This document shows, piece by piece, positions 23,216 through 64,000 of a stretch of 64,000 nucleotides of DNA. The notes under the pieces are model-generated. The model was given only the letters and a program-made list of their open reading frames with translations. It ran no database searches and was not told the origin of the DNA. Source of the stretch: Macrostomum lignano (taxonomy: Eukaryota); assembly GCA_002269645.1 (NCBI GenBank), contig NIVC01000210.1, positions 25,469 to 89,468 of the forward strand. Reading direction: 5' to 3'. Both the position numbers and the translations under genes were made by a program. The first letter of the stretch is position 1. Every line of letters starts with the position of its first letter.

Positions 23216-23460
23216 CCTAGCTTAGATACGAGATAATTTGTGTCTCCAGGGTTTCTGTTTACCGGCTCGGTCCCTCTTTAGGAACTGGACTCGCTTTAGC
23301 ACCGCTCAATAATACTCATCATCTACGTCTTTTTCCGTTTCTACTCGTACGTAGTAACGTAGTATATTTTAAAGTAGAAACATGGATTCTAAATATCATT
23401 ATTAGAATGTTAGAATGATACTAGAATGTTATTCGACAGATAAACCCTGAAATTTTAGAT

Positions 23461-24230: not shown

Positions 24231-26494
24231 TCAAAGAACAATTTCAATCACCGCGTCGCAGCAAAACAGCCAGATATTCTGGACCACATACAACATTTAT
24301 GACGGAGTCGGAATGTAAATGCGATGGATGCCGTAGATCCCGTAGATTAGGTTTTAGTTCCCCAGTGCCACCAATGTTTGAACTACTTTTATTTTTAGAA
24401 GCTTTTGAAAGCTTTCTTTTTAGAAGAAATTCGAAATAATTTGAACTGAACAAATTCATGGCATGTAGAGGAGCACCAGGCTCCTCAGTTTCTAAACTGA
24501 AGTGGAATTTTCAATCCAAGTAGCTAGTTTTTATAACCATTGTAACTGCACCGAATTACGAAGCATCTACGAGCTATGCATATGTAACCATTATGGCCCA
24601 ACTTTCAAGTTAAATGCGCTGGCTGCATAAATGCAACAATAGTTTTATACTACTTACAAGAATCCGCGAAAGTAGTACCAACTATTTGTCTTTATCTGTC
24701 TCCTTTCTGTCCAATACAAAGCAGATATTTCACAATCCTTCGTAACAGATATTTTTAGACATGGCAGAAAGAAAATGTGTGCTACGAATGCTTTTTATCA
24801 ACACTCCTTACTATTTTGCCTATCTACGAGTATTAGTATAGAAGATTAGTAGATTTGGATGGATAAAAATTCAAGCCTGTAGATCCGCAAGGCCACCTCT
24901 CCGGCGCTTTTGCGTTTCTAAAAAGCGTAGCCACAAGATGGACAGACAAAGAGACAAAGTGTTTGCCAATTTCTACCGGCAGGAGTGCTCTTACAAGCAA
25001 AATTCTCTGGATTCAATCAGTCTCTACATGTATTTGAAACGATGCTCGACAAGGCTGGAGGCATTGAACACATTGTTGCTAAACTTGTCTTTTTCTAAGA
25101 CTGGTTTTATTTAGTCTGGCTGACATGAAATAATTGATCGTTTTCGTTGAACTTAACCTGTAATGGAGTAACCCTGAAGGTAAAGATGCAGAGGGAATAT
25201 GAGGAGGTGTACGGACAGATGCAGCTCGAATATATTGACTAACCCCACCGCTTAACTTTAGGCTTCGAGAGGAGCCCACCCTAAAGTTGAGAAATTAGCT
25301 AAGAGAAATACAATAGCTAGCTAAACCAAACACAAGCACAACCAAAGCCAGTGCTCCACTGTAATTTGTACTCGAAAAGTTGAGAATGTGATAAATATCT
25401 GTTTCAGGCTGTAAGATAACAAATTGGCTCTTCAAGGCTAAGATTCCGAAATGAAAATTATAAAAGAAAGATGTAAAATAAGGTACCTCACAGATAAAAT
25501 AAGTATTTCATCACACTTCTGAGCTGCAAACTCGTCTCTGCTGTACATACATGCACATGAACTCTGAATGCATAAAATAGTTTGAAGCGACAATAGCAAT
25601 ACTGGACGCAGAATTGGAATTCTAAACAGGGCTGCACCACTTTCTCAGGCATTTTATTTACCGCAGCCTCTGCTTCGCACTACGTAAAGCTTTCTAGCAA
25701 ATAACCCATCTGGTCTTCGCGACAACTTGTGCCGCAGAAAAAAACGGTATCATCAGCTTACACAACGTCACTTCCCAAAGGTAGCTAAGACACTCCTGCA
25801 GGCTGTATTATCTGAAATTTTGTCTGCAATTAAGTGAAAGTACAGTATGTTCTTGCCAATGAAGTTAAAAGGTGGTGAAATGCTTTTAGTGCGCTTTTTA
25901 TTTCATTTATTTCATAGAATTCACTGCATCTGTGAGGGGAGTTTTAAAGATTAAAATATTTTTTATGTAGCTCGTATGCGGGCCAGCGTGAAACTGATTT
26001 CGACCTGAGAACTCCAAGCCCCATTATACTTTTGCACCAGATTAACCTCTACAGCAACTCCAACTTCAACCTTAGATTAAACCGATTGATGCGTGACGGT
26101 TTTTTCTTTCTATGAGTATCCCCCAATTAGTTATTTTTCACCTTTACTGAGACATGCTTTCATTGCTGACCCCACTAAGTTTTTCTGATCAATCCTGGTA
26201 CCTTCCGGTAGATGTCTATCACTTGGTTGCTTGGCGGCGAGGTCAAGAATACCTCAAGACCATTTATATCGCGTGCCACGCACGTACTTTGTGCCACCAA
26301 ACTCAGAGAACACAGTGCTGCCAGCGTTTTTATCAACTGTCTTGGTAATTGCTTCTCTTGCTTCTCCAGACCACTCAGTAATCTTCATCTTTTTCTTTTA
26401 TCGTTTCAACATTCCAATAGTGTATGAATATTTTATAAATTGTTAAGAGGGACATAAAATTGCTGTTTATCAGCTAAATCATTAAGTTTTAGAT

Positions 26495-27518
26495 ATGAGC
26501 TCAATAGAATACGAAGACCTGCTGTGCCCAGTGTGCAAAGACATCTTTACCGATCCGTGCTTCGTATGCCCGAACCATCACATCCTGTGCCGCGAATGCC
26601 ACAAAGGCCTTTTGGAGACGTCCCCTTACACTGCAAAGTGTCCGGAATGCAGAGAAAAGCTGTCCACACCGAAGCAGGACGCTATCAGAGCCAAGCTCGT
26701 CCAGACTTTCACCACCAGCGCCACCTGCCAGGTGCGCGAAGACGAAACCCAGTGCTGCAACTCAGTCTTTGTCAAGTGCGGTCACTGCAACCTGAATGTT
26801 TGCGATCTTCACTTCAGTGAGCATCGACTGAAGTTTAAGGTAATGTAAGCTGAAGTATTTATTAGGAAGGATTCAAAAGCAAACTAACAGAACGGAACGC
26901 TTGCCTTCCCAGACTGAATGCGAGAACCTGTTAGAATCTGTGGAAAATGACGCGACTGAATGCGAACGAGTCAGCGCTACACTGCAGCCTTGGAAAGCTC
27001 AGATCGCCAGTCTTATCGAATTTATCGATATAGAAAAAGAGCGCCTCGAAGAGCTGCTGAGAGCCACAGAGCAGAGGCTGGAGCAGGCAGCTGCCGGGTC
27101 CTCCCGCCGAGCTGAGGCAGACGGTCTGCGAGCCTCCATTCGATCTGGCCAACTGCAGCAAGCCAAAGCCATCGCAGATCAACTGCAAGCTGCTGCTACT
27201 GAAGCGCCAAAGCTGGACTCGCAAGATTTCGGGTTGCCTCCAACCGATGAGCAGAAAAATGAGATTGAAGCTGGTAAAGCAAAGCTGGAAACCATAATCA
27301 GGACTGCTGCAGAAATTTGCGGTGCTTTTAGCGGTAGCAATGAGTTTCATGTTCCTTCTTATGATTCTTCGTCCTTGAGCCCTGCAGAACTCTCGAGCCC
27401 AATCTATGCTGAACACCTCTTGCAAAGTGAGGTAGTCTATAACCCAATGGCCCTTAATACAGATCCCCATGAATTCGATGCGGATGACTATTCTGCTTTT
27501 TTAGTGAGACTAGATTAA
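26495..27518 (+). CDS. TRIM-like gene 4 (RING + B-box-like + coiled coil), ~316 aa
   Basis: Exons 26495-26839 and 26913-27518 with a 73-bp phase-0 GT-AG intron; open frame; closest paralog of genes 2 and 3. Confidence 0.85.
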
Positions 27519-37304: not shown

Positions 37305-39831
37305 TCAGGGTACAAAGCGACGCAGAATCTGCCTGAACGGCTCCTCAGGATGGCCTCTACCAGCGGCCGAGAACCTCCCAGTCGGTCGAAGGACGCCGCT
37401 AGGCGTGAGTATCGTCGAGTCGCCGTGCACCGCCTCTAGAAACGGTCGCTCCATCTCGTGTCCCAACTCTGTCGCTTTTAGATCGAATTCCTGACCGGAT
37501 TTTACCGGCGGAGACACCTTCGGCGTCTTAGTCAACGAATTCAAGTTGTGAAGTCCTCGACGATTAAGTCTGTTGAAGGCGACGCTGGCCACTTTTAAGT
37601 CGCCAGTGTCCAGAGCTTCGCGCAACTCGACAGCATCGGCAGCCGCGGAAGTTGACAGGGCAGCTCCGCGCGAGGAATCCGCCATCTCGGCGGCCATAGC
37701 GGAGAGCGCATCAAATCGCTGCCGCTGATGCTCCAGGGCATCGCGACAGTCGGCAAAGAGGCGACTCCACTGCTGCAGAGCCGACTGGCGCTGCTTGGCT
37801 GACTGGTTTGCCGACTCTGCCGCTCTAATTAAAGTGCTGGACTCCTCCTGAAAGAAAATTTGACAAGTTGACATGTAGAACATGAACACTAATTGCAGCA
37901 ATATCCGTTGTAAACCGTTGCTTTGTTAAAATTTGAGCGAAAAATGTTAGTTTTAGTTTTAGAACTTTAGTTTTATGTAATAATAATTAATTACCTCGTT
38001 CACCTGCCCAAATAGGCAGATGTGCAACCGACAGCTCAGCCGCAGCTATTGCGCGGCGCATCTGAAGGCTGCGTACGGCTGTTCAGTCCAAGGACTGGGG
38101 AGGGGGGGGTCGCCACACGCACCCTCAATTACCCCAGCTAATGCTGGCACCCATTTTACAGCTGGGTGAACTGAAGCAATGCAGAGTTAAGTGCCTTGCT
38201 CAACGACACAAATTGTTCCGAGTGGGTTGAGAATCGAATCGAGGATCGACCTTTCAGTCGTGAGTTTCGACGCTGTAACCATTAGGCTACAACCCCTTTG
38301 TTGCAGTTTATTAATATTTGTTGTTACTTTGGTAAAACAATAGGAATCGGAAATCCTATTATAGTTTAGAATTTATAGCTTTGCATACGAGTATAAGTAG
38401 CAAACTACGAGCATAAGGTATAAATACGGTATTCCACCCAAATAATTTTTATTGTCAAAGCTGTCAATCAGTTATAATTGTGTTCCCCGTGTAAAGTCAA
38501 CAGATCATCAAGTACTCGTAAAAAATATATGTAAAGTCAGCTTAATGAAAGCCAATCTTAGATTCATGAAAGGTCTAGAAATGGAGGATCAAGGCTGAAA
38601 GCATTGCAGCAAACCTGGGAGAAATCCGAATGACCATATTTTTTAAGGATTCAAAATGGTCTAGCGCTTATTAAGGTATTCAATCGCTGTTTATTAAAAA
38701 AGTGTTTGTTATGCTACTGATTGAGGGAAATACCAATGAAAGAAAACATACGGCTATTGATACGGATCGAACTGCTACAAACCGATGACTACTTCTACCG
38801 ATTGATCTGCTACAAACCGATGACTACTTCTACCGATTGATCTGCTACAAACCGATGACTATTTCTATCGATTGATCTGCTACAAATCAATGACTACTTC
38901 TACCGATTGATCTGCTACAAACCGATGACTATTTCTATCGATTGATCTGCTACAAATCAATGACTATTTCTATCGATTGATCTGCTACAAACCGATGACT
39001 ACTTCTACCGATTGATCTGCTACAAACCGATGACTACTTCTACCGATTGATCTGCTACAAATCAATGACTATTTCTATCGATTGATCTGCTACAAACCGA
39101 TGCCTACGTCTACCGATCGAGGACTAATAAATTTAAACAACTATAAAAGATTGAACGACCGTCCAGCAATCACGCGCTTTCGTTAAACTAACTCTGAACG
39201 TTTTAACTTACGATTATAACCCACCTTAAATCGCATCTGATCGTTAGCGTAATGCATCTCGCACAGGTTCCGATCGCAGTGCTCGCACCTGGCAAATACC
39301 TGCTGCAGACAGGCACAGTTACCGGCACCCTCTCGAGCGTCGCATTTCGCGTGATGAAGCCACTGCTCCCGCCGACGCCAGCTGTCTACCACGCCGCGGA
39401 CGTGAGGATTCTCCAGCGGACGATCGACCAGACGCTCGCGACAAATCGGACAGCGGGCCACCTCGCCAGACGAGCGACATTTGGTTGCGATAGCCTGGTG
39501 ACATCCGCGGCACAGAGTGTGATGACGGCTGCACACGAAGCACGGATCAACGAAGGTGCTCAGGCACACTGGGCATTTCAGCTCCTCTTCGAGATCTTTG
39601 ACTGCCGGAATCGAAACGTATTTTTGCATTTAAATAGACAGTTTCAAAACTTGGGCACTTTGCTCAGGTTTGTTGCGTTTTAAGATTGATTCAATTTGAT
39701 TATAGTCGACCGTAATACCGAAAGACTTAATTGTTACAATGTCATAGGTTTGAATTTTTACAACAAACAACTTTACAATGCAGAAACAACAACTGAGATA
39801 ACTTACAGGTTCCACTTTCTGCAGACATCAT
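37305..39831 (-). CDS. TRIM-like gene 5, ~314 aa
   Basis: Exons 39831-39807 (MMSAESGT, phase 1), 39601-39225 (RING + B-box-like), 37847-37305 (coiled coil); frame continuous; intron 2 contains a SINE and the 35-bp repeat. Confidence 0.8.
37978..38296 (-). mobile_element. SINE family 1, copy 3 (intronic)
   Basis: Head GGGGTTGTAGCCTAATGG on minus strand; core-like segment; TAA-rich tail. Confidence 0.8.
38765..39118. repeat. 35-bp minisatellite (GATCTGCTACAAACCGATGACTACTTCTACCGATT), ~10 copies
   Basis: Directly visible, head-to-tail without spacers. Confidence 0.95.
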
Positions 39832-41134: not shown

Positions 41135-43618
<2,484 letters not shown>

Positions 43619-43996: not shown

Positions 43997-46539
43997 ATGA
44001 ACGATTTTGGTTCAGGTAAGGTTGAAAGCAAGTTAATCCCCAAATTTAAGTAAAACAGGCCTGCTTTGAAGCTTTTTAAAATTTTTTATGGAATTTCGAT
44101 TCAAATTGAAACAATACGTGCGCCCGTTCTTGCATAGTTCTAATTAGGAGAGTAGCGGAGCTGGAATTAGTTTGAGGGTTCATCAACGCAAATTGGCCTG
44201 TCCAAAGCTGTCTTGCGATTCCCATGGCTTATGACGGCCAACCAAGTCTCAAGGGACAGGGTAAAGGTCGGGGATGCCCGACGATGGGAATAGCGGCGTT
44301 TTTGCGTCATTTATGTGTTTAGGGTTTTTTATTGAACCAAGCAAGATTAGCAGTTTAAATATTGAGGGTTTCATTGACACTATAGCAAAATGACAAAATA
44401 AAAAAGTGCATTTTGGTCATTTTTGTAGACTGTACTTGGTTTTGGTTGATTTTTTATACATGAGCCCAAAACCCAACGCCTGGCCCTCTGCAATGAGCAA
44501 ATCATCTCAAGGTTTCAATGTTGTTCCTATATTTTATACTTCTGATTTGCAGAGGTTGCTGAGGAGCTGCTATGCCCCGTGTGCTTGGACCCCTACAACG
44601 ACCCCGTATATGTGTGCATCCATCACCATAGCCTGTGCCGCGAATGCTACCAAATGATTGTTTCGACAGCTGGCAGTGACATCCCGCAGTGTCCGCAGTG
44701 CCGAGAGAAATTGACCAGACCCGTTGATAATACTCAACTGCGCCGTCTGGTGGAGGCTCACCAACAGCAATCTCAGCAGGCGGTCCAATGCCAGGACTCT
44801 TCCTCTGGCGGCATCTGTGCTCGGCGTAGTGCTGAGCGATGCGGGCACTGCGAGCAGAGCTTCTGCGCGCAGCACTTCATCGCTCATAAAGAGCAGTTTC
44901 AAGTGCGTATGAAATTCACTGTTTCTTTATTGTTTTTTAAGGTTCTCGCTCTGAAGATTAATTTTTAGGTTCTTAAATGCGATCACTGATTTCAGACCGA
45001 TTGCGTTGAGCTTTTGTCGGCTGCAGATGAAGCAGCTCAGCAGTCAGAGAGTCGACAAAGAGTGCTAACCGAATGGGAAGTCTTTATTCAAAGCTGTGTA
45101 GCGCATCTGATTGAGAATTCGAGACTGCAGCGATTAATTCCCGAATCCTGGCTCGACGATGCATCCCGGAGGCACGCCGAAGATTTACGAAGCACCCTCA
45201 ACGCCGGTGACCTGCGGGCAGCCAGAGTTGCCTATGATGAACTCAGGATGGCCAAAGCGAGATTCGACCAGCAAGGACCGCCTCGCGAGATCGTTGGAGA
45301 GTTCAGCCGAGATGCGTTGTTCTCTCTGTTTCAAGAGAAGCTTTCAGCTCTGCTGACCGCAGCCGAACAGGTGTACCTTGACGGCATCTACGGCTTGGTC
45401 GAACGCGTTTGCCACATTGGAATTTCCACAGTCAAGCTGAAGATTGGGAAAGAGATTCAGAAAATTCCGGAGCTCAAATGCCGGCTTAGTTTCGTCCTGC
45501 CCGGTCGAGGCAGTCACTTCACTCCCTATGTTGACCTCAAAGCCATTCGTGCCGAGCAATTTGAAAGGGACATTCTGATTCGTTTCGATTTCCAGCAGCA
45601 GTTCGACTACAGCACCATCAGTATGTCGAACGGTCCGGCCGTTTTAGCACAGTTTCTGCAGAGAGGACCGATTGAACTGCCGTTTTGTCTTCAGATGAAG
45701 TTTAAGGAGAGGCTGGCCTCCGGGGTGGCTGAAAATACCTACTGCAGCAGAATGTATCAACTCGCAGCTTTGCTGCCACTGGCGGAGGCGATCAGTCGTG
45801 GGGAGAGCATCGAAAACGTGGAGTGTCCTTGTGAGATTCTGAATAAGAAGTACACTTTAAATTACCTTTGTCTACTGAGTCATGACCCTGTTATTTAAAC
45901 TACAAAAGCTTTTAGTGATAAAATGCACCAAAAACTCGCGAAACTAACTTTTCTGGTTTCTTAGAAAATATTTGGATTCTGGGCTTGCGCAAAAATGCAA
46001 TGCTGTCAAGCTGAAATAGGAAATAGCTTCTCTTCAACACAAATGATAATAATATTCGTTTTTGTAGAAGCAGATTTATAGTAAACTTTTCTGCTGGTTA
46101 GATCAGAGGTATTTGGAAAGAGTACTTAATTGTTCAAAATCAATAGTTTTTTGCTTTATGAACTAATTAGATAGAAATTGACTTTTACAACTGTAATGCG
46201 CATACAAAATCAAGGATTTACAGAAGTTGCCCTGTCTGTCTAATGAGTGTCTGACTGGTGGAACTTAACATTGAAAACGTGAGCTCCTAGCTCGACCGTA
46301 AAGACCAGCTGACGCAGTGCAATTAGCCAGTCGTTGGAAGCCGGTTCCGGCTTCTTCTGAGATTGAATCTCCAAGAATCAGCCTTAATTGGTCTTCCCGC
46401 AGTGCTGGATGAAAATGAGGCACCTCGCGGATATGTCACGGTGTCCACCAACCTGCCGTGTCTGCTGAACCAAGTCTACCGGGAGCTGCCGGCTGAGGAG
46501 CAAAGCGAAGTTGAATTGAGGCTTCGAGGAGAAGAGTAA
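43997..46539 (+). CDS. Chimeric TRIM-like gene 7: RING + B-box-like + coiled coil + RPGRIP1L RID-type C2 domain, ~446 aa
   Basis: Exons 43997-44015 (phase 1), 44553-44902, 44996-45830 (phase 1, donor CCTT|GTGAG), 46403-46539. C-terminus (VCHIGISTVKL, SFVLPG, IRFDFQQQFDYS, PIELPFCL, ISRGESIE..P | RGYVTVSTNLPCLLNQVYRELP) aligns with the RID copies at 47.6-57.9 kb. Confidence 0.8.
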
Positions 46540-47621: not shown

Positions 47622-50600
47622 TTAAAAGTCAGGTGGTGAGTCACCTTTTGAGAGATGAAAGCATAAAATTAAGTCTTTCAGACTCAAAAAATATCACTGC
47701 ATTCCATACTCACTTTTAACGTGATGAAGCAGCCGTGGCAGGCTGGTTTCAATCGCGATGCTGCCAATCTTCTTCTCGTTTTGAATGACTGAAATGAAAA
47801 CGTTGATTGAATCTGGGGTGATTAACAGTAAAATACATTTTTTCTTTGTTGGATTGTGTTTTAAATGGTGTTTTTTTTATTAGATTAGAGGCAGGGGGGT
47901 TGTGTGCACCCTGGCGCACTTTAAGCGACATAGGCACACAACCGGCGAGAGGCATTACTGCCCATTCCGCCGACTCCCCTGAGCAGGCATACAAGCACGC
48001 GGATACGTACGCAGGCACACACTCACACAGGAGTGTACAGCGGCCCTAACTTTATATTAATCGTTAGGCATGTACACTTCACGGCGCCTTGGGGGGTTGG
48101 CTCTCAAGGCCGTTAATTGCACGAGCAGAGCCAAGCCGAGATTCCAATTCAGCCCCAAATTAATGTGACTGCACTTGGAATCGAGCCTGGGTCGCTGGCA
48201 CACCAGAGCAGCTGCGCTACCGCTGGGCTACGGCCCCCGTTAAATGGTGTTTTAGAAATCGAACAAACTCGGAGAAGAAGTATAGCTCGTAGATCTATTT
48301 TTACCGTTACAGAAAATAACAAAAATTAAATATAAATATTAAATATTAAATATAAAAACTGACACTCTGCGGAACCTTTGTGAGAATTCTATTTATCGGT
48401 TGATTTTTTATAATTCGGCTAAAGTAACTTGGTCACTCATTTAGTAGTCAATATATGATCCACTACACAAAACTTTAATGCCTTATAAAAGACCCACGAA
48501 ACATTTCAACGTCTGTAGACCCCACGTCGATGTACGTCGCAGGCAATTGGGTATTTTGACGTTACGCCGAAGGACAATGACATCATGCGTAGGTCAGAAT
48601 TCGATGTAATGTATTAAATGTACAAATCTGCCCCCCAACATAGATGGACGTCGAAAACGTCTGCTGACCTAAATGACTTCAAATTGCAGACGGGAGAGAG
48701 AAATCTCTAAATCTCACGTGGAAACTCGTTCCAGATACAGCGGTCCTGTTCGATACTGGGTTGCAGGCCAACTCTAGCCTCGCACAAGTCGCCGGCTGCC
48801 TTACAAGCCAGCGTGAATCGAAGCTCGACTGGATCAGCCAGTAGCAAGCTGGTTAGCTGCTTCCTCATTCCTTCTTCTGAGTAATCGAAGCGCCATATAT
48901 AGTCGAAGTTTAGGCGATAATCTCCAGGCTGAGACCACCCGGGTCTGGGGATGAGCACGCTGGGCGTGTGCGTATCCTCAGAGTCGGAATAGCCAGGTAG
49001 ATTGAAGTAAACATAGCAGAATTGGTTGTTAAGTTTGGGATTTTCTAAGACCTCACTGTTCTCCATTAGATGCACAGTTGATATGGCGATGTCGCAGTGC
49101 CTCGAAACACTTTTCACTGTGAATGGTTTTTGTGTTTATGCTTTTTCTAGAATTCGAAGCGTTTACAAGGGTTAAAAGTCGAAAATACTTACTCCTATAA
49201 TTCAGATGACTTCTGATGCTGATAGGTACAAATCTAAGTAGAGATTTTGGTAGCTCACGGCCGATCTCCAGTAGCAAGCTGGGCAAATCCGTGCTGATTT
49301 TGATGCTGCCCACCTGCTCGGTCTTCGCCATTACTAAAAGTTTTTGATAAAATTCATTACAAAATCCGAAATTCATATTTACCGTATACGCTTAACCAAG
49401 AAAAAAGCAAGTTTACACGTACCAGGAAATCTCTCGTCTCTAACATCTACATGTACTTCACGTCTTAAGTAATCATCGAGTTTTATGATAGTCCTGCCCA
49501 ATTCAGTCTTAACGAAAGAGCTTGCCAAGTTTGGTGATTTGCAAAATACTTTGAACGCGATCTGCAGGTTTCCCTCGAGAATCGACTTGGCCAGCATCAG
49601 GCGGTTTTGGTAGTTGCCTGTCATGCTGTAGTCGTAAGTCTTTTCAAAATTGAAAGCAAGAAGGAACCCGTTTTTCGGAGATTGCACCGAATTCAGGACT
49701 GGTCTCAAAAGAGACGTCATTGTTTCTTGAAGCTTGAAGCCGACTAGGTCAAATGCTACGTAGCACTTTCCCTTGCCAAGCTGTGAATTTGTCAAGACTT
49801 CAGATGAGCCGTTCAGTTGCACGTCAGCTATTCGCACAGTGCAGTTCTCAACGAAGGCTTCATCGAATTTGCGAATAGGCTGATTATTACCTGTAATCGA
49901 AAGGTACATGTCTGTCGTATCTATGGGAATGCATAGTTGTAAATATGAAGACTCATTTATTTAATAGTTAAAAATACAAGGATAGTTCGACATTGTCTCA
50001 CCCTCGGCTTCATTTTCCTCAGCAGTAGGTTTTTGGACGTCCTCAAACGAGTCTAACCGTTTCCTGATCGAAATTAGCAGACTCGGCAGGCTCATGCTGA
50101 TTTTGATGCTGCCAACTTTATTACCGTTTGACAGTACTAAAGTTACAAGGGATATGTTTGTTGCGACAACAATTCGGACACTATCAGCATGTGATGGTAA
50201 AAGCCACCTAGCTTTTTAACAGACAGTAGACAGTTTTTTAAACTCGTGAAACTTGACTGAAATCTGCATTGCTTGCATACTAAGAACTCAGATTAATGCC
50301 ATACGATGATCGATGCTATCATATAACACTGGGACTACTGAAACAAAGGGAAAACCACCGTTGGACTAGTGCCTGTTAATAATAGCTAAGAATTATATCA
50401 TTAAAAGTTATTCCTATCTTTATTGTGCTACTCGGGTAAACGGATGACACATTTTGAGTCTCCCCAAGCCACTGACTGTCTATCTACCGATCTAAAAAAA
50501 CTCACGTGGAAAGCTTTGTTTTCGAATATCCTCGCCTCGAGCAACAAACTCGTCCATTTTGACAGTCGCCTTGCCAAGATCCATGTAGAATTCACTCTCT

Positions 50601-53600
50601 GAGTCAGACGGCTCGCAAGCTACCACGAACGGAATCTCGATGCACTTTTGTCTTAAAAGCAGCATAGTTAATATTTTGCTCTTGCTTGCGCTGCTGTAGT
50701 CGTAGACTCCTTGGAAATTGTAGCTGAGGCAGAACTCCTCAGGTCGCGACCGGCCCGGCCTGGGCGTCGGCACAGATCCGGGCGTTTCCGTCTCCTCGCT
50801 TCGGAAACTGGGTAGCGAGAAGAGCACGGAGCACTTGGTGTTGTCGAGTTCTGGCTTCCTCAAAACATCGCTTGTTTCACTGAGCTCCACATTGAATATC
50901 TGGACTTTACAGGTTTCCATAGTGAATGAAACTAAACCTAGTAGCTTTTTTAAGTCGTTCTAATTCTGTCTGGCATCATTTAAATAGCAAGTTCGCAAAC
51001 TGCAACTTCAGCAGAACTTCGGAATCTAAGAGGGAAGCTGAAGTTCTTAGGTAAAAATTGTCCACCTCAATGAACTCCCACTTTGTCTGAGTAATTTGGG
51101 CTCTGGAATAATATTAGCAAAAAATGAAGTCAGAGATCTTCTACGTGCTGCAAAAGCCAATCTTCCTTTGTGCGAAAGAGAGTTAGAAATTGTCAGAAAA
51201 GTGGATGCGCTGCACACATCTTTGAGTACGTCATTGTGCATAATAAAATGGCAGCACTAAAATTAGCAGCTTACCCAAATGAAGTTCGCTTGATATTTTC
51301 TATTTATCTACCAAAATATAAAAATAAAAACGCTGAAACAATATCTAATTCATAATATAATCAGAATATAATTCTGAATTAGAAATAAAAACAAAAATTG
51401 CAAACTTATTCACTAAGAATCTACGATACACACACCGTAAAACATAACAAACGAGATTCTGTATAGATGTACATGTTAGTACAGGAAATTTAATTTAGAA
51501 ATAACCTGATGCATCAGTTACACAACCAATGAGCATATGCTTACATGTAAAGTTGAGCAAAATATTAGTAGCATGTACAGCTGATTCTAACGAGCGCACT
51601 GTTTTGATTTTAGCTCTCATAACTTTTTTAGCAGAATTTCAAACCACTTGGGCACTTTGAAATTGATAAGCTTTCTAGCTCTTTAAAAAAGTTATTGACT
51701 TTTTTTTACCCTCTGGTATTTCATCGCAGATTTCCCGCAGCAGACTGGGCAAGTTGGTGCTAATCGTGATGCTGCCAACAACTTCATCTCCGTTCAGTAC
51801 TGAAATAATAAAAAACGGCGTGTCTGGTGAACGACGCGTCTACTCGACATGTTCACTCAAAGCCCATTATACTGACATTTAAGCACGCACAAACATGAAA
51901 ACAATCATAAAATCATCAACTCAATCATGAAATTATCAACTCAATCATGAATCATCAACTCAATCATGATATCATCAACTCAATTATGAATCATCAATGT
52001 AATCATGAGATCATCAACTCAATCATGAATCATCAACTCAATCAGGAAATAATCAACTCAATAACGAAATCATCAACTCAATCAATGAATCATCAGTGTA
52101 ATCATGAGATCATCAACGCAATCATTAAATCATCAACGCAATCATTAAATAAACAACTCAATCATGAGATCATCAACTCAATCATGAGATCATCAACTCA
52201 ATCATGAATCATCAGCTGAATCTGGAAACAATCAACTCAATAACGAAATCATCAAAGCAATCAATGAATCATCAGTGTAATCATGAGATCATCAATGCAA
52301 TCAATAAATCATCAACTCAATCCATAAAATCAACAACTCATTTTTGAAATAATCAACTCAATCATGAGATCATCAACGCAATCGTGAAATCATCAAATCA
52401 ATCAATGAATCATCAATGTAAGCATAAATTCATCACCGCAATCATTAAGTCATCAACTCAATCATGAAATCATCAGCTCAATCAATGAATCATTGACTCG
52501 ATCATGAACTCCTGAACTCATGAATTTGATTATCATCAAAAGCGTGGATCATTCAAAATTAAGACCACAAAAGAACATCAAAAGTTAGCTAGGATAAAAA
52601 ATTAAAGCGAATAAACTAATTAATTAACATGTCTTGAAAAAACCTACACGGAAAGCTCTCGTCTTGAATGTCCTTGCCATCAGACACACGATCTTCGAGC
52701 TTGACGACCGCAGTGCCAAAATCCAAGAAGAACTCGCTATCCTGATCCTCCGCCTCGCACACCAAGGTGAACGGAAGTTCAACTGGACTCGCCATTAACA
52801 GAGTGGCAAGCTGGATCCGCTTATTGTAATTTGTATCGTAGCTGTAGTCAAATCTCTTCTGGAAGTTAAACCGAAGATGGAAATCTTTTGCCTTGGTCCG
52901 GCCTGGTCTTGGTGTTGGTAGCGAGAGAGAAGTCTCCGTTTCGTCCATATCAAAACCAGGTAGATCGAAGGACACAAAGCTGTTGGTGTTGTCGAGCTCG
53001 GGATTCTGTAGAGCTCGGCAAGATTGCTCTAGCTGGACACTCGATATACAAACTGTACACATCTCGCGCGAGTCTGCTTTAGAAGTCGACTGAGTCCTCC
53101 GACTGAGTGCTGAAGTTTGTTTCAGGTTTCAAACTCTTATTGAGAGTGTCTTTACGAGAAAATGACGAATAAATACAGAGTAAAATGGCAACAATAAAGC
53201 TTAAATTCTCACAGTCTTTATTATGATCATCGGCAGCTGGATTCGTTTCTATGCAAACGGCGAGCAGTAAGCTGGGCATACTTGTGCTCAGTTTTATCGT
53301 GCCAACTTGCTCTTTGTAGTAGGAAAGCACTAAAATATAAAACATCCGATTGATAGTACGCTCGTAGTTAAGGAACTGATTTCAATTGATTACCTACCGG
53401 TATTTTAAAAATATAACATTCTCAACCCGCACCAGGAAAGCTTTCCTTTTGGACGTCGTCCTTTCGAGCAATTCTATTATCGAGTCTGACAACGGCTCGG
53501 CCCAGATTAACTTCACTTTGCGATTCGTCCGGCAGGCACATCAAGGTAAAATTGACATCAGCATGATACCGGCTGAGCATATCATCCAGAGCCTGCCGCT

Positions 53601-53841
53601 TGCCTCTGCTCGAATAGTCGTATGAACTTTCGTAATCGAATTTCAAGACCAGATCCTGGCGTGTGGACGCTCCTGGTTTTCGGGTCGGCAGGATGGCGGG
53701 GGTCCTGGTGACCTCCAGCTTATAGCTTGGCAGATCGAAAAGCACGTAGAACTTTGAACTTCTCAGATTCAATCCTGCCAAATCAGGGCAAGTCTGGTCG
53801 AGCCGGACGCTGAATATTTTCACCAAGCAGCTTGATTCCAT
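47622..53841 (-). CDS. Multi-RID gene: five tandem RPGRIP1L-derived C2 (RID-type) domains, ~914 aa
   Basis: Exons 53841-53433, 53329-53213, 53109-52648, 51799-51710, 50931-50506, 50136-50002, 49890-49423, 49333-49193, 49116-48718, 47788-47714, 47644-47622; all ten introns GT-AG and phase 1; total 2745 nt with no internal stop. Confidence 0.7.
47920..48240 (-). mobile_element. tRNA-derived SINE family 2, copy 1 (intronic)
   Basis: Minus-strand head GGGCCGTAGCCCAGCGG (A-box) ... GGCTCGATTCC (B-box-like); body shared with 59860-60100. Confidence 0.7.
51895..52530. repeat. Degenerate ~20-bp tandem repeat (ATCATGAAATCATCAACTCA-like)
   Basis: Directly visible; lies within predicted intron 52647-51800; explains the MNHQ-repeat ORF. 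Confidence 0.9.
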
Positions 53842-54708
53842 GGCTCCGCTGTAAAATCCGTATAAAATCGATGTAAAATTCAGATATTATTAGGTTGATA
53901 AGAAAGTTCTCGCCGTTTTTAGAAAATTCCAGAAACTTTTTTTCCAGAATGTTCTGAACTACTGATTGACTGAATTACTGAATAAATTTGTTTGAATTAC
54001 TTCGTTGAATAACTTTGTTGTTATACTCGTGAAATCTCAGTTTGTTGAAATGAAGAAAAAACAGCGAGAACTTTCTTATCAACCGAATATAATTATTATC
54101 AGTTGCTCTTTCTGCAAGCTTACCCAAATTGATGGTTCTTTACTATCAAGACTTGCAGTCAATATAATCGTACTTGCATATATGATTACGAACTTATACA
54201 CTGCTACAGAGGTATTCTGAAACTTTTTCTGCATTGTGGTTGGCTTTTTAGCGAGAGACAGTTTGCATTTTGAAAGACTCACAATTCGTTCCGATGGATG
54301 GACGTATGTACGAATGAGCGCTCAGAAAGACTTACTCATGCATGATATGTGAGAGAACCATTTAATTTCGACAAATCTTACACTATTCATCACTGGTCTA
54401 TTATACGAGTACATTAAACTGCCTGCCAACTCTCTGAAATTAGCTCTTATTGTGGAGTATGTGCGTACTTAGCATCCACATCTAGTCTGTCTGAGGTTTG
54501 CGTCCACTTTTTACAAAGCATTCTTTTATTAAAATGCGTCTAAACAGTCTCTAAGCGTAGCTTTCTGTATGCTAGAAAGACTACTGCACTCGTACATCCG
54601 TTTTAGTAAGTTACATGTATTTTTAATTTTTCTCAAAAATAGTGCATCAAACCTCTAAAGGACAGTTAATTGCTTGCTTGCTTTCTTTTATTTGAAAGTA
54701 AAATTCAC

Positions 54709-56647: not shown

Positions 56648-59600
56648 TTAGTTAACGAATCTGACGGCAGACTTTTTCGCGTCCGGGAGTTCGTTGTAGA
56701 CCTCCAGTAGCAGGCTCGGCAGGTTCATGCTGATTTTGATGCTGCCCACTTGTTCATCGTTCAGCATTACTAAAATTGTTAGAAGACACATGGCATGATT
56801 AATGTGAGGTTTGGATTAGTCAAACTTTTTTATTTACCAAATATTGAAAAAAATATAATTACATATTACTACTAATGATAATAATTGATTAAACCTGCCC
56901 AAAGGGTATTACGTGGCGCATCTGAAGGCTGCGTACGGCTGTTCAGTCCAAGGACTGGGGGGTCGCCAGATAGCCTCAATTACCCCAGCTAATGCTGGCA
57001 CCCATTTTACAGCTGGGTGAACTGAAGCAATGCAGAGTTAAGTGTCTTGCTCAACGACACAAATTGTTCTGAGAGGGTCCAAAATCAAACAACCGACCTT
57101 TCAGTCGCTTGTCCAACGCTCTGTAACCACTAAGGCTACAACAAGTATTTGTGAAAGTGTATTTCAAATAATCCTACTCGAGTTTTCACCCGAGTCAACT
57201 GGAACTCACGAGGAAAGATCTCTTCTCGAATGTCCTCGCCTTGAGCGATTCGATCGTCCAAATTGACCATCGTTTTGCCCAGATCCACGAAAAATTCGCT
57301 CTCTGGATCAGACGGCTCGCACACCACAGTAAACGGGATCTCAATACTCTTCTGTCCCAATAGCAGCATCGCCAGTACTTTGCGCTTCTCGTAGCTGCCG
57401 GCGAAACTGTAGTCGTAGACTCTCTGAAAGTTGTAACTGAGGCAGAACTCATTGGGTCGGGACTGGCCGGGCCTGGGCGTCCAGAGAGACACTGGCGTCT
57501 CCGTCTCCTCCTGCGAGAAGCCAGGCAAGAGGAAGAACACGTAGCACTTGGTGTCATCGAGGTCGGGATTTCTTAAAGCCTGGCAGGTCTCGCTAAATTG
57601 CACGTTGAATATCTGGACTGTGCAGGCTTCCATTGAAGCACGACCAGTAGCTGTCAGCATCAGCTGCTGGCGGAGCTCGTCCCCGTGGCTACTCTCCGTC
57701 ACCACGCCATCGGATTCCTCCGCCTCCGGTGCCGGACGCTCTGTGTCCTCGTAGTCGTCCTCATACTCAACCTCCTCCACTTCGTCTTCCGGTTCCGCCT
57801 CGGCAACGTCGTAATCGTCGTCTCGCAGACTGACGGACTGCAGATGCGAAGCGACGCCGCTTCTACCAACGCTTGGACCTGAAGAATTCGTGGAGTTTAG
57901 AATTCGCTTGGAGCTTGGAACTATTGGTTTAGTCTTTATCTTCTGCAACCTGCTTATTCGTTTTTTAGACAAGCCCTGGGTCAGGGTCATTGACAATGCC
58001 GAACTCACCTAACGATGTATTTCTCACGTCCTGCGTATCCGTGATGCTAGTTACGCTGTCGGTGACGGATGCTAAAGTGATGAAACCAGTTAGGAAAATT
58101 TTAGCAGCCTTGTTTTAGCCAGAAATAGTACTAACAGTAGGTTGATTAAACATGCATAGGCCTACCATCCATGAGGGTGCTGACCCGAGTCTGGCTCGCC
58201 TGCGTATCGCCAGCGCCACCGCTGCCGCCGATGCCAAGCCGACGCTCTGCCGCGGCAGCGGCTAAAGCAGCGGCCGACGGCGCGTGCCGTTTCGGCGGTT
58301 GCGGCGTCTGAGACACCTGCGGCTGAATTTGGAGTTGGGATTCAAAAATACAGCTAGCTAAAAAATAAACTTCAGTAAATTTTTTATTATCTTATCAACA
58401 CTACCAACCTGATTGTCCCCAGTCAGAGATCCCGACCGACTGCCAGTTCGTGCACTCGGTCGTGGCGACGACGATCCCGACGCTGAATTCGGTGCTACAG
58501 CCGACGCTGTTGGCGATGGACCATGGCTGCTTCCGCTGGCACTTCCTGTGCCTCGGCGCGGGGTTCTCGGCTGCTGAACTGGCTGTGGCTGCGGCTGCTG
58601 GGGCTGAGGTCGCTGCTGCGTGCTTCTCGCTGATCCGGTGTCGGATCCCAAGGCCACCGCCGCGCTGCGATCAAGAGTAGAGTCATACCCAGGTTCCCGA
58701 CGGTGCTTCAACTGCGGCTTGTCTCTCAGCAGTTCAGCTTCGCCAGTCATCAGTGGCAGAGGCTCGGCAGGTCCGTCCCAATGACCAGCTGGATTGTACG
58801 CAAACTGCCAGCTGAGCTCAAGCTCCAGAGTGCCGTTCGGCTGCTGATCAGCTCCGAGTAGTTGGTAGATGCCCTGCACAGCCCGGTTCTGGCTTAAGGA
58901 CACTAGATCGATCTACATGGGGATACGAGTAGATAGGGGATTAGTAATGGGGTAAATCGGTAAGAATAAGAATCTTTTGGGTCTTGAATATGCGAGAAAT
59001 ATGAAAAGTTCAGCCATGGCTGTTAAAACGTGTCTAAATCCTTATTGAAAACAATGAATGACATCCAAGTCACCTTAGCAACGCCTAGGTAGGCGCTTTC
59101 AAGAGGATCGTCTTCGTCCAGCACCCAGACGACGAGCTTCTGCGTCTTCAAATAGCGATCCAACTCTGGGGTCGGCGTCAGAGTCAGCTGCTGGTAGAAT
59201 TGGAACTCTGGATCGCTCGAGTTTGGGATGGCGGGCGAAACAGTGTCCTCACAGTCGAAGAACTTGTAGGAGCAGTACGGCGTCGGCTGGAAGTCCGGTC
59301 GGCGAGCTTTCAAGCCTCGACAGCGGACGATCTTCACGCCCAGAGTGTTGGCACCGCCGGCTGCGCGACGATTCTGCGCCAGGTCGTCGAGAGCTTTCAG
59401 GCCCTCCGCGGCCGCTTGGTGATTGGCGGACATGTAGCCCAGAGCCTTGGCGCGCTCCCGGTAGAGCCGCATCGCCTGCTCCATGGGCACCCGCATCCGC
59501 ATCCAGTAGTCCAGGCAGCCCACCACCGTGCCTCCGTCCACCGACACCAGCTGAGCTCGGCCGGACACCGGGGCGGTCGGTTTCGAGTCGAGCAGCTCGC

Positions 59601-62600
59601 GGAAGTAAAGTCGACAAGCGGCCACTTGATGATAAGTGACGCCTACTGAGTGGTAGAGCTCCAGCCGTGCCTGTTGTGGGGCAGATTACGCTTCCAGTAG
59701 AATACGAGCAGAGAGAGTCTAAATGTATTTCCGATGAGTTTTTACTAAACAAGTTTCCGAAAATTAAAGGGGCTCATCAAGCGGTGGTTCGGCGGTGAAG
59801 GTAATTCTGTCCACTTCGCTGACTTCTGAGCACATCAAAGCTACAAGCGCGCCAATACTGTACGCAGGCACGCACTCATACACGTACGCTCACACAGGAT
59901 GTACAGCGGCCTTGACTTTCTAAGGCATGTACACTCTCTGTGCTTTGGGGGGGTTGGTTCTCATTGGTGTGAATTGCACGACAACCCACGGGAAAATTTT
60001 CGAGCACACAAGCCCCAAATGGATGTCGCCACGCACGGAAGCAAACCAGGGGTTGAGTCGCAGGAGTCAGCAGCGTTTCCCTCTGAGCTACTATGCTTCT
60101 TAATCCGCTTAGTATCACAAAGAGCTGATCAAATGACCAACAACACGTGTACATTACCTTTTCCTTGTTTATGTAGTGCAGGAACGAATCGTCAACCTTC
60201 ACCACGTACTGCACGGTCTTGTTGAACTCGGCCACTCCGCCAGCTGCGCGCAGCACATCGGTGGTCTGCAACTCGCACACATAGAACGGCCAGGTGCAAA
60301 ACAGGGACGGATTCGAGTCGCCACCGAGCAGCTGGATTCCTTCATCTGTCAGGGTTAGACGGCCAACGTGCAGCTCGACGAGATTTTCGCCGTTTTGCAG
60401 GTGCACAGTTTCGTCGATTTCGTCCACTCCGTCGGCCTCTTCGCTTTGAAGCTGGTTTTGCTGGTCGAGCAGAGCGAATTGCTTGGTGCCTGCAATGATA
60501 GCCCGGGGTGTCAAATAAGCTGTGCTGAACTACAGAAACGTCTTTTTTGCGATTGAGCATTAAACGTCTGTTGTGCCAGGCTTCTAAGCAATCCGAAGAA
60601 AAGGTAGGGTACACTCAGTACTGAAAGTTCTTGTAAGGGACTAGACAGCACTCTCGATAGCTTGAGTACGGCTTTATAAATCTCGTTTAGATCCAGCACT
60701 GAGAGTGAGCATAATTAATTGTTTTATCGTCTTGATCGCGACATGAATCATTTGTCCAGATCCCTTAAACCGTTGAAGGCTAAGAACTCTTCTTAAAAAA
60801 ACTGCTTTCTCATCGCAACACCGGTAGAGACACTCACCATAGGCAACGTCTCTGAGCTGTCGCTCCAGTTTTCGAATTCTTGCAGCTCGAATGTCGAGTA
60901 GCTTGGCCGATTCGGCCATCTTGGCGTCGTGATCCGCTTTCATCGCTTCTAGGCGACGCTCCGTCAACGACAGGCTGGCCTTCAGGTCCTGATTGATGCG
61001 ATACTGAGCCTCCAGTAGCTGCCGTGTCTTGTCAAGCTCTTGGATCGTGTCCGAGTGGGCGGCTTCGATCTCGCGTAGGCGTCGCTGGTTGTCCTTTGAA
61101 ACCTCAGCGTCCACTTGATGTAGGAAGTCTAGCTCAGATGGTTGCTGCTGCTGGCGCCGCTGCTTCACCAGCACGATGGCCTCTTCAACTTCGTCCAAGT
61201 CCACAGCACCCTCCTGCAGTTTTCGTCGTCGGAGAAATGTTCGAACCCGTTTGAATTTATAGAAGGACCCACTTTCGATTTAAAATGGAATGTCAAGATA
61301 GGACTTGCTAGCGCAGTCTCTTATCACTGTATTAACTATTTATAATCAAATCCAGTTGTGCGTTTAGCCCCAGTTGGTCTCAAAAGTGTTTTTCTTTGAT
61401 TAAAAAAGTCTATTGAGAATTACGAGTGTCAAATCAAAAAAAAATTCTACAAGCTACAGTGTGTTTTTTCTAAACTGTTTGCTCTCATCAGAAAAGCTAA
61501 TCACCGGGATGAGCAGGACTTCCTCACCGCCGGAGATAAGAATAATGTTACCAGTAGGGCTGCGGCTACTCTAACGCAAAGCCTCCGTTGACATTGTAAC
61601 ACAAACACGGAATGAATTTGGTCGCGTACGGAAACGAACCAGGGATGGTGACGTGGTCAGAAGCGTCTTACCATTGAGCTTCTCTTTTCTCTCACCGCTG
61701 ATTGTGGGACAACGTCGCCAAATGCGTAGCATCAAGTGGCCTACAACCTTATTGCAAATATGCTTTTACGAGCGTAGGTATGTGTCCTAAATATAAAATT
61801 GCAAACTTGCAAAACAAATGCATACTTGTATCAGCTTTACAAGCATCGTGGAATTCAATAGAATGATAAATAAGTTCTGAAATATCTAACGAAAATCCCA
61901 ATATGCCTTAAATATCCAGCACTAACCTTGTTAATAAACTTCATTTTTTCTCGCAGGCTCTCATGCTTCTGCTGCAACTCGTAAAATTTGATTCTCAGAT
62001 TGCTCAGCTCTTTTTCAACTTCTTCGCCTTTGTTCCGTTCGTCCTCCAATCGGTCGAGGAACTCGCCTTTCTCGCCGACGTCTCGGTGCATTGTGGCCTC
62101 CAGCTGCTGAATCTGCGTCATCAGGGCCAGCTCGCGAGCTTTCCACTGACGCTCGCGCTCGGTGTCGAAAGCGCTGCAAAGTTCAGTAGAAGTTGCAAGC
62201 TGCAAGGGCATCTGATTTGTGAATGATTTGAAAAGCTATCCACCCCCTAGTTGTGCAATGGACGACAAAAGGACTCAAAGACAAGGCTCCTGAGCAAGTC
62301 CGTCTCTTTGTCTTTAACTTTATCAAGCTTTATAATTTTGATATGTTTGTTATGCTTGAATCACAAACAAACATAACAAAAATAACATTGGGTCTGCATT
62401 CTATCATATACAGATTCATATCTTTCTTCTCAAGTAGTCCTTGAAATCAACATCGTTCAAATCGGATAGTTGCTCAATTTGGAATCGAAAGTGTTATTTT
62501 GTCTGTAAAAAACTGGAGAAAGTTCACATCTTTCAAATGCAATTCGTATTTATCAAGCAAAATTTCCCATATTTTAAAGATTTTGCGATTGTGCGGTAGC

Positions 62601-63700
62601 TGTTTGAAATGCGACTAAAATATAGGCAGCTCTGACCTGTTTGTCAGCTTCTCGTTGGCTTCTCGCAGAATATTCGCCTCCTTGTTGGCGTCCTCAAGCG
62701 CGTGCTCCAGCTCCATCAGTCGCCGTCTGGTTGCCTGCGCCGATCCGGCGCTCTCCTTCATGCTCTCGCCTCGCGCTCTCGAGCTCTCAGCTCACGCTTC
62801 ATCCGCTCCAACTCCTCTAGGAAGCCGCGAGTTCGTCTCCACTGTCTCGCGCATCCGCTCCTCGTGCTGCTCGCAGCGCGCCTGCAGCTGCTCAATGATG
62901 GCGGACTTTTCGCGTAGCTCACGTTGTAGGCGAACCTTGTCGAGATCTTCCTGCATGGCTGAGCGCTTGTCTGTGCCGGCCTGCATGCGAGCCAAGTCCA
63001 ACTCCGACTGAAGGTCCTGCGTCAGTTTTTTGACAGTTGAACGAATCGGTAATTGTCCTAATAAAATTTGAATAGCCTATAGATACAAGTCAAAAGTAAT
63101 TGCGTAATTGGTTTTTCTTTCCGTGTTAAATAAAATGGCTCGCTATCCTACGTGAAGTACTCAAATGATGCTGTCACTACAAAATGACTTCAATTCAAAT
63201 TTTAACAAATCAGTATTGAAAGAGCTAGTATAATAAAAATTATTAGTACTTTCTTGTCTTAATTTTCTGTCTCACCTGTATCCGCCTCTGGTGCTCCATC
63301 TCCTGAGCGTACAACTTGTCCTTGAGTGCATCCAACTCAGATTCCAGGCGCTCGTTAGCCATCTGCAGCTGGGTTCGCTCGTTGCGCATATCTTCTGAGC
63401 GTCCCAGGCTGCGCTGACGCTGATCCCGCTGCATCTGCATCGACTGTTGCTGCTGCTGCGGTGGCTGGTAAAGGACTCGCGTGTTGGGACCTCCGCGGGG
63501 CCGCGCTCGACCGCTGGCAGTCCGAGTCTCTCTGACCAGCGTTGCCGCCACCCGGCTTCGCCTGCTGCAGGAGCGACAGCCGCTGCCGCAGGTTCTCAGT
63601 CTGCTTCTCCAGCTCGGCATTGCGCAGCTCAAGTTTCACCACCTGATCGGTGGCGCGCAGCTCCGCGGCGCTGGCGCCGTTTTGCACTTTTAGGGCGCGA
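56648..63700 (-). CDS. RPGRIP1L: RPGRIP1L / Fantom (MKS5) ortholog, 5'-incomplete
   Basis: Exons ~63690-63276, 63016-62637, 62173-61927, 61213-60838, 60489-60158, 59670-59074, 58912-58409, 58316-58166, 58071-58009, 57878-57210, 56769-56648. Recognisable motifs: LLDIRAARIRKLERQLRDVAYG; C2N (GENLVELHV, FCTWPFY, QYVVKVDDSFLHY); DYWMRMRVPMEQAMRLYRERAKALGY; C2C (PYCSYKFFD); RID (EETETPVSL). Apparent indels in the two 5'-most exons. Confidence 0.93.
56872..57143 (-). mobile_element. SINE family 1, copy 4 (last intron of RPGRIP1L)
   Basis: Minus strand TTGAGCAAGACACTTAACTCTGCATTGCTTCAGTTCACCCAGCTGTAAAATGGG; head GTTGTAGCCTTAGTGG. Confidence 0.8.
59860..60100 (-). mobile_element. SINE family 2, copy 2 (diverged, RPGRIP1L intron)
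   Basis: CACACAGGATGTACAGCGGCC...AGGCATGTACAC...GGGGGGTTGG...AATTGCACGA is colinear with 48020-48125. Confidence 0.65.
61600..61690 (-). mobile_element. Degenerate tRNA-like SINE head
   Basis: Minus strand AGCTCAATGG (A-box-like) ... GGTTCGTTTCC (B-box-like); single copy in the window. Confidence 0.35.
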
Positions 63701-64000
63701 ATCTGGGCGATTGTTTTGGTTTTGGTTCGAGGGCGTTACGCAGAATTTTGTGCTTTTTATGCGACTCTGGGCGTATGACTCTCGCACTGATCTTTATGAA
63801 TACGAAAAAATTAAATAGATTACGATTTTTAGCAAGACCTCATCAATAAAATGCATGCGCTTCCCATTGAATAAATTCATTGAAACCATCGCATGAGGAT
63901 AAACTGCACTACAGTTTTTTTTCGCACCGCTATTTAAAATCAGAATTTCATTCTGATTTTTTTAAAGCTAGCTGTTTAAAAAGGCTGAGAAAATGTACAA

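Follow-up and report, generated by a model that had tools for sequence, protein, structure and literature searches.

Probable local domain shuffling in Macrostomum lignano: a TRIM-like gene with an RPGRIP1-type RID and a convergent parallel in mussels

We analysed a window of 64,000 nucleotides (nt) from the flatworm Macrostomum lignano (contig NIVC01000210.1, positions 25,469 to 89,468, forward strand), which contains the gene Mlig013276, here called the candidate. In its product a RING finger, a B-box-like zinc motif and a helical region are followed by a C2 domain of the RPGRIP1 type (RID). This architecture, put forward in a preliminary description of the locus, is real and arose from two gene families that flank the candidate. 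We consider it probable, at about 55%, that the candidate is a genuine, transcribed, lineage-specific chimeric gene in which the RING, B-box and coiled-coil (RBCC) part of a TRIM-like protein has been joined to a RID, and that its product is a ubiquitin ligase (E3) with the RID as recognition module. The case is best read as a domain shuffle within one locus, to which mussels offer a convergent counterpart, in a lineage-restricted family whose function we infer.

The preliminary description had proposed an open model of four exons and about 446 amino acids (aa). This model is correct: the exons join on the plus strand to an open coding sequence (CDS) of 1341 nt and 446 aa, and every intron is bounded by GT and AG. 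It is not new, because the protein is identical to GenBank PAA67346.1/PAA87951.1 ("hypothetical protein BOX15_Mlig013276g2/g1", UniProt A0A1I8J8Z0) and the GenBank gene span covers the same 2543 bp. In public annotation the protein carries either no Pfam domain or "RING-type domain" alone, since the RID is invisible to Pfam; the RID part is unlabelled and had not been recognised before. Mlig013276 is annotated on two contigs of the Mlig_3_7 assembly, in copies that are identical over the entire gene including the introns, so that this pair holds no information on the ratio of nonsynonymous to synonymous substitutions. A protein of 446 aa from an older, independent assembly (A0A1I8GNY8) is 98% identical to the candidate.

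The GenBank annotation of Mlig_3_7 was built from a genome-guided RNA-seq assembly (StringTie, TACO, TBONE, TransDecoder) and not ab initio (PMC5730564). Three of the neighbouring RID units (R3-R5, Table 1) and the closest RBCC paralogue (TA) are absent from this annotation, and the candidate is annotated on both its contigs. Together this is indirect evidence that an mRNA covering all four exons exists.

As had been described, the junction between the RBCC part and the RID lies inside exon 3, at about aa 255-261 (window positions 45390-45410). An open reading frame (ORF) at 45014-45898 spans it, and the continuity across positions of about 45380-45420 that the preliminary description wished to see confirmed is given by one uninterrupted exon. 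Since the junction lies within one continuous exon and ORF, neither splicing nor read-through is required for the fusion. We also asked how probable it is that the join between TRIM-like gene and RID fragment is a false product of assembly or annotation. High redundancy and many repeats mark the assemblies of M. lignano (PMC5730564), and the older annotation over-merged neighbouring TRIM-like genes. A0A1I8GQ11 (P0006, 806 aa, older assembly) maps to 26486-27308, 19095-18009, 14233-13356 and 11061-10594 on both strands and is likely such an over-merged prediction; the UniProt models of this family that are based on the older ML2 assembly, including A0A1I8GQ13 discussed below, therefore need caution. 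Against an artefact stand the uninterrupted exon, the presence of the same gene on two Mlig_3_7 contigs, the 98% variant from a different assembly and the same collinear architecture in the diverged A0A1I8GQ13, and we give this explanation almost no credence. An assembly chimera in particular was rejected on the basis of the single-exon junction and the three independent assembled copies.

The C-terminal part (aa 261-440) is a diverged RID of the RPGRIP1 type. Residues 258-358 match the minus-strand RID exons of the window, and a hidden Markov model (HMM) of the six neighbouring RIDs scores 63.7 bits against the candidate (E 7.6e-22 for one target; model positions 2-175 of 183, aa 261-440), a similarity far beyond chance. 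A profile of all seven sequences matches the RID of human RPGRIP1 (PDB 4QAM chain B) over the entire domain with E 8e-11. The earlier assignment of the last ~190 aa to a RID is borne out by these matches and by the predicted fold. AlphaFold2 (AF2), run on aa 256-446 with a small alignment, gave a beta-sandwich followed by two helices with a predicted local distance difference test score (pLDDT) of 84.6 and a predicted template modelling score of 0.82. The best PDB match of this model in Foldseek was again 4QAM_B (E 1.4e-8, template modelling scores 0.61/0.64); dysferlin C2A, the C2 domain of RPGRIP1L and further C2 structures ranked behind it. The C-terminus is thus predicted to be a C2-type beta-sandwich nearest to the RPGRIP1 RID.

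The exon structure of the domain was also compared. In all seven local copies, the candidate and the six on the minus strand, the RID exon ends with (F/C)P plus one base followed by gt, which constitutes a phase-1 intron, and the G-x-I/V-x-I/V-S-x-x-L/M-P-x-L-L motif recurs in the small exon that continues each copy. The earlier description is therefore borne out for the phase-1 intron and the own small last exon of the candidate, and the six other local copies have them as well; the term "ancestral" used for the intron reaches beyond this comparison of the seven local copies to RPGRIP1L of other animals. The candidate shares with RPGRIP1/RPGRIP1L (PF18111, 4QAM chain B) the homologous whole domain including the C-terminal helices, as well as the phase-1 intron and last exon of the local RPGRIP1L-family gene. 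It differs in the position of the domain, which stands behind an RBCC part, whereas in RPGRIP1L the body consists of coiled coil, C2-N and C2-C.

No other RID copy in the window has diverged as far as that of the candidate, which is too diverged for Pfam. Among canonical RIDs of flatworm, mussel and human, conservation is highest in a loop with the sequence ETETPxSLPxPRPG. The loop is still present in R0, R2 and R3, in P0013 and P0015 (including the other RPGRIP1-like protein of M. lignano), in the Mytilus proteins described below and in human RPGRIP1. It is lost in both flatworm chimeras, where the candidate reads SHFTPYVDLKAIRAEQ and A0A1I8GQ13 reads NWNYSAKVELSNSNKCK. In addition, the candidate RID has an insertion of ~8 residues ahead of the penultimate strands.

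In the N-terminal part (aa 1-255), a complete C3HC4 RING is followed by a B-box-like zinc motif and then by a helical region. Five other sites in the window match residues 3-138 with 29-43% identity (E 1e-17 to 1e-24), in agreement with the earlier statement that the first two-thirds of the protein are paralogous to neighbouring RBCC genes. The RING spacing is complete (C14-x2-C17-x10-C28-x-HHH-x2-C35-x2-C38-x14-C53-x2-C56) and its Cys/His positions are invariant among the TRIM-like paralogues. Likewise C86, C95, C103, H105, C106, C111 and H114 of the B-box-like motif are invariant across the family. This motif aligns with a C..C...C..C....C..H...H motif downstream of the RING in bona fide TRIMs, and in one canonical TRIM the equivalent stretch draws a weak ANCHR-like_BBOX match; its alignment to the TRIM21 B-box is of low confidence, with an AF2 pLDDT below 50 at this place. 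The full-length AF2 model places helices at 112-169, 178-192, 196-210 and 228-255 with pLDDT of roughly 40-70. The helical region is paralogous to the TA stretch 41680-41405 and can be aligned with the paralogues to about aa 255, near their ends. Pfam TRIM_CC showed no match on the candidate.

A profile of the family matches the RING of TRIM21 with E 3.7e-10 and further matches TRIM72 (positions 8-195), TRIM32 and TRIM25. Beyond the flatworm, the next relatives in the exhaustive search described below were canonical TRIMs with B-box, TRIM_CC and PRY-SPRY. Judged by these similarities the label "TRIM-like" is justified for the N-terminal part; for a putative B-box and coiled coil of the candidate the evidence consists of the residue pattern, the alignment and low-confidence AF2 helices. 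The candidate thus resembles TRIM21, TRIM72, TRIM25 and TRIM32 in its N-terminal C3HC4 RING, the second Cys/His motif, the long helical region and a C-terminal beta-sandwich at the position used for substrate recognition. It differs in the C-terminal module itself, a RID with C2 fold, and in that zf-B_box and TRIM_CC are unmatched by Pfam. To our knowledge the RID is not among the C-terminal domains known for TRIMs.

The candidate sits between the two parental families, with the TRIM-like cluster on one side, the RID array on the other and the RPGRIP1L-family gene 11 kb off (Table 1). It lies head-to-head with TA across a gap of ~1.5 kb; on the other side R5 is its tail-to-tail neighbour, with a last exon that reaches to 47694. 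Most of the gap between TA and the start codon of the candidate is occupied by an (ACTA)n microsatellite of ~263 copies (42449-43499), the cause of a strong spike of GC and AT skew seen in the bin at 42-44 kb. TA, TB, TC and TE are intact genes of ~275-320 aa that end behind the helical region and lack any C-terminal domain. They share a phase-0 intron past the second zinc motif, and the models of three of the four match database proteins at 99.6-100% identity. Two further TRIM-like copies are decayed, TD (~23425-24436, plus strand) by a premature stop and a frame change past the B-box exon and TF (~21757-21097, minus strand) by absence of the RING; their decay shows ongoing birth and death in the cluster. 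Within the RID array, R1 and R2 form one annotated gene for a two-RID protein of 331-370 aa, and R3-R5 are open exons without a GenBank gene. With R1-R5, a C2 domain of ciliary origin has expanded in this lineage into genes of its own.

Table 1. Candidate gene, its parts and the two parental families in the window (positions are those of the window)
Feature	Position	Strand	Description
Exon 1	43997..44015	+	ATG, MNDFGS, phase-1 GT donor; start matches GenBank CDS
Exon 2	44553..44902	+	RING and B-box-like zinc motif; phase-0 donor common to all TRIM-like paralogues
Exon 3	44996..45830	+	helical/coiled-coil region, then RID main part, one uninterrupted exon
Exon 4	46403..46539	+	final strand of the RID, helices of the C-terminus (GYVTVSTNLPCLLNQVYRELP...) and stop codon
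C3HC4 RING finger	44573..44701	+	aa 14-56, CPVC..C.HHH..C..C..CPQC; eight of eight ligand positions present
B-box-like zinc motif	44789..44887	+	aa 86-118, C-x8-C-x7-C-x-H-C-x4-C-x2-H-x3-H
Helical/coiled-coil region	44996..45391	+	aa 124-255, first part of exon 3; AF2 helices, paralogy
RID-type C2, main part	45407..45830	+	aa 261-401, continuous with coiled coil; ends with Pro and 1 base, then gtgag
RPGRIP1/RPGRIP1L-family parent gene	56648..64000, 5' end past window	-	1290 aa annotated (P0010); C2-C2_1, C2, RPGR1_C (2.8e-13)
R0, RID exon of parent gene	57633-57211, last exon 56769-56648	-	RPGR1_C, phase-1 intron
Tandem array of five extra RID units	47694..53841	-	each a RID exon and a small exon; downstream of RPGRIP1L-family gene
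R1	53832-53434 / 53329	-	RID exon / small exon
R2	53065-52649 / 51799	-	RID exon / small exon
R3	50920-50507 / 50136	-	RID exon / small exon
R4	49852-49424 / 49333	-	RID exon / small exon
R5	49096-48719 / 47788	-	RID exon / small exon; internal deletions
TA	41138..42441	-	RBCC-only, closest paralogue (43% identity in RING/B-box); head-to-head with candidate
TB	37308..39629	-	RBCC-only; annotated 319 aa (P0009)
TC	26486..27515	+	RBCC-only; 316 aa (P0008)
TE	13356..14410	-	RBCC-only (P0007)

We then considered how the fusion may have come about. The candidate RID lies on the plus strand and the other six RIDs of the window on the minus strand, as the preliminary description had seen. Due to this opposite orientation, an origin of the fusion by simple read-through is excluded. 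The candidate RID begins at the usual N-terminal Cys of RIDs, past about aa 255. No RID remnants were found downstream of TA and TB in the window comparison, and there is no sign of a recent RID loss at these genes. A local RBCC gene would have lost its short C-terminal tail, and a RID copy from the adjacent tandem array would have been joined to it in frame within one exon. In the simplest route, a RID unit would have been duplicated in inverted orientation, after which the stop codon of the TRIM gene would have been lost.

The preliminary description had known of no RBCC-RID architecture. We determined how widespread it is by an exhaustive profile search of 1.84 billion representative proteins, a collection in which other Macrostomum species are probably thinly represented. 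The full-length profile was made from the candidate and four hybrid rows, in each of which a TRIM paralogue of the window was joined to a RID of the window and one residue was removed; since profile columns are independent, such a composite profile is legitimate. The search yielded 2449 matches at E<=1e-3, the best 150 of which were rescanned with separate RBCC and RID HMMs. Among these 150, both halves were found together only in the candidate's own cluster and in A0A1I8GQ13 (P0012), a second M. lignano protein of 420 aa. A word-indexed homologue search with the full candidate returned only its own cluster, and the same kind of search with an alignment of seven RIDs returned only the R1+R2 gene products. 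With an alignment of 14 RID sequences it returned 30 RID proteins (0/30 with a RING).

A0A1I8GQ13 aligns collinearly with the candidate over its whole architecture, from the RING through the B-box-like motif and the helical region to the RID, and has the junction at the same site. It differs in that the two proteins are only 26% identical, that it is encoded outside the window and that the older ML2-based annotation is its sole source. Neighbour-joining trees place its RID as sister to that of the candidate (91% bootstrap), all M. lignano RIDs are monophyletic (100%), and the RBCC halves of both chimeras fall into the subfamily of TA and TB (100% bootstrap). Both chimeric RIDs sit on long branches. 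These findings fit one fusion followed by duplication and long divergence.

Outside M. lignano, a canonical RPGR1_C is joined to a B-box with significant Pfam scores (PF00643, PF22586) in several Mytilus proteins of ~250 aa (P0116, P0165, P0166, P0176 and P0177). Examples are CAG2186541.1 (named "RPGRIP1L") and "protein fantom" of M. galloprovincialis; one of the Mytilus B-box and RID proteins also contains a THAP domain. The Mytilus edulis gene at CAJPWZ010000139.1 10001-21323 spans 11 kb. These proteins resemble the candidate in the TRIM-type B-box zinc finger upstream of a stand-alone RID. They differ from it in having neither RING nor coiled coil, and in their canonical RID, which scores 167-178 bits with Pfam in full-length members and keeps the ELETPFSLPKPK loop. 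Since the Mytilus RIDs fall outside the clade of all M. lignano RIDs and belong to another phylum, their fusion was independent. Short RID-only proteins were found in oysters, clam and sea urchin. The combination of RING, B-box, coiled coil and RID was therefore seen only in M. lignano among the best 150 of 2449 matches, and to this extent the claim of novelty stands; the second M. lignano protein and the Mytilus proteins show that the candidate is not alone and that a RID beside a TRIM-type zinc finger is not unique.

Several observations weigh against an intact chimeric ligase with a working recognition module. Pfam RPGR1_C (PF18111) gave no match on the candidate at E<=1, although four of the six neighbouring RIDs pass its gathering score, and Pfam zf-B_box matched neither the candidate nor its paralogues. 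The proposed Pfam check thus gave no direct match for these two domains, and the homology of the RID becomes visible only via local paralogues or profiles. For the RING, several Pfam models match with E 1e-4 to 7e-3, all of them under the gathering score. The B-box and helical regions are of low confidence in the full-length AF2 model. The grouping of the candidate with A0A1I8GQ13 could be due to long-branch attraction. No orthologue of the candidate outside M. lignano was found in the homologue and exhaustive searches. Loss of ETETPxSLPxPRPG could mean that the binding function is gone altogether. In the M. lignano literature searched we found no report on function, expression level, localisation or phenotype of Mlig013276.

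The candidate could instead be a young and effectively neutral chimera, expressed via the kept promoter of the TRIM-like gene and drifting towards a pseudogene, one by-product of heavy local duplication in a genome that has itself been duplicated recently. The locus is rich in duplicates and decayed copies (TD, TF and the deletions in R5), R3-R5 and TA are missing from the transcript-based annotation, the candidate has the most diverged RID in the window with the conserved loop gone, and an orthologue in another species is not known. On the other side, the ORF of 446 codons and all splice sites of its four exons are intact in three independent assembled copies, all Cys/His positions of the RING and the B-box-like motif are kept, and the C-terminal domain is still modelled confidently as C2. 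The main argument is the collinear A0A1I8GQ13, which is also intact: neutrality over the divergence that separates two intact ORFs at 26% identity is hard to reconcile with the data. We regard a neutral chimera as unlikely.

If the candidate is a chimeric ligase, its RING would recruit a charged E2, the helical region would dimerise the protein, and the C-terminal beta-sandwich would serve as a protein-recognition module in the role that PRY-SPRY, NHL or MATH domains have in other TRIMs. Gene structure, homology of both halves, fold, local origin and the second paralogue are the observations from which we start; that the protein acts as an E3, that it dimerises and what it binds are inferences. 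In mammals, RIDs are C2 domains whose ligands are proteins, and they bind neither calcium nor lipid. The RID binds the RCC1-like domain of RPGR (PMC4519163), and the RID of mouse Rpgrip1l binds the 19S subunit Psmd2 and on its own raises proteasome activity at the ciliary base (PMC4494006). RPGR and PSMD2 would thus be the obvious candidate partners of the chimeric RID. Loss of the loop, the insertion of ~8 residues and the long branches make an inherited binding of RPGR or PSMD2 doubtful and favour a changed partner; judged from these sequence features, a new or modified ligand seems more likely than inherited binding to the RPGR RCC1-like domain or to PSMD2. That the partner is indeed RPGR or PSMD2 we hold to be rather improbable.

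The same background allows for a regulator or competitor instead of a substrate-targeting ligase. Such a protein would compete with RPGRIP1L for RPGR or PSMD2/Rpn1, or would bring its RBCC part to the proteasome at the base of the cilium, and so tune the function of the transition zone or the proteasome. The effect of the isolated mouse RID on Psmd2 and the proteasome (PMC4494006), the binding of the RPGR RCC1-like domain (PMC4519163) and the existence of RID-only proteins, encoded at this locus and also known as stand-alone RIDs from oysters, clams and sea urchin, are in line with this explanation. It conflicts with the absence from the chimeric RIDs of the loop that canonical RIDs have and that the local R0, R2 and R3 keep, which makes shared partners doubtful, and we find a regulator of this kind rather unlikely.

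TRIM families expand in lineage-specific clusters and often act in innate immunity. A third functional explanation is an immune sensor with an integrated decoy, in which the RID imitates a ciliary protein of the host that effectors of pathogens attack, and binding makes the TRIM part signal or degrade. The candidate does lie within a cluster of fast-diverging paralogues, and the examined Mytilus B-box and RID gene adjoins a C-type lectin gene, which is weakly suggestive. A decoy, however, should resemble the protein that it mimics, whereas the candidate RID has diverged furthest in the window and has lost the loop. An immune decoy thus appears highly improbable.

Repeats and a retrotransposon remnant make up part of the surrounding sequence. 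Minisatellites were found at 54709-55464 (15-mer, 50 copies, between R0 and R1), at 7342-8501 (16-mer, 72 copies) and at 463-1230 and 2715-3407 (two 9-mer arrays of ~80 copies each), and within introns at 51902-52520 (20-mer, R2 intron) and 38761-39117 (35-mer, 10 copies, TB intron). Long regular minisatellites of this kind give rise to spurious long ORFs, for example 54670-55476. A retrotransposon remnant at 18300-19340 on the minus strand, in the GC-rich 18-20 kb bin, contains an integrase zinc-binding domain (PF17921) and a reverse transcriptase RNase H-like domain (PF17917) and is flanked by TRIM-like copies.

The candidate is a rare domain shuffle with both parents, the TRIM-like cluster and the RPGRIP1L-derived RID array, still beside the product. 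This adjacency makes it a clean example for the study of how ligase specificities arise. If the ligase is active, the RID would be a new kind of C-terminal recognition domain in the TRIM repertoire; if the chimera is neutral, it would be an ordinary by-product of a highly duplicated genome. The Mytilus B-box and RID proteins and the stand-alone RID genes suggest a life of the RID outside RPGRIP1L that has not been discussed, and the reuse of the domain bears on RID ligands besides RPGR, such as the proteasome subunit PSMD2. As a tentative extension, for which we see some possibility but would not argue strongly, the RID may be a portable recognition module captured more than once by TRIM-type zinc-finger proteins, and RBCC-RID proteins may form an unrecognised class of TRIM-like E3s that steer ubiquitination to a partner at the ciliary base or the proteasome, be it an RPGR-like propeller, PSMD2/Rpn1 or a new ligand. 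RNA interference and transgenesis exist in M. lignano, so that these questions are testable. If this extension holds, ubiquitination would be tied directly to the biology of the transition zone, in a transgenic flatworm model that is open to genetic work.

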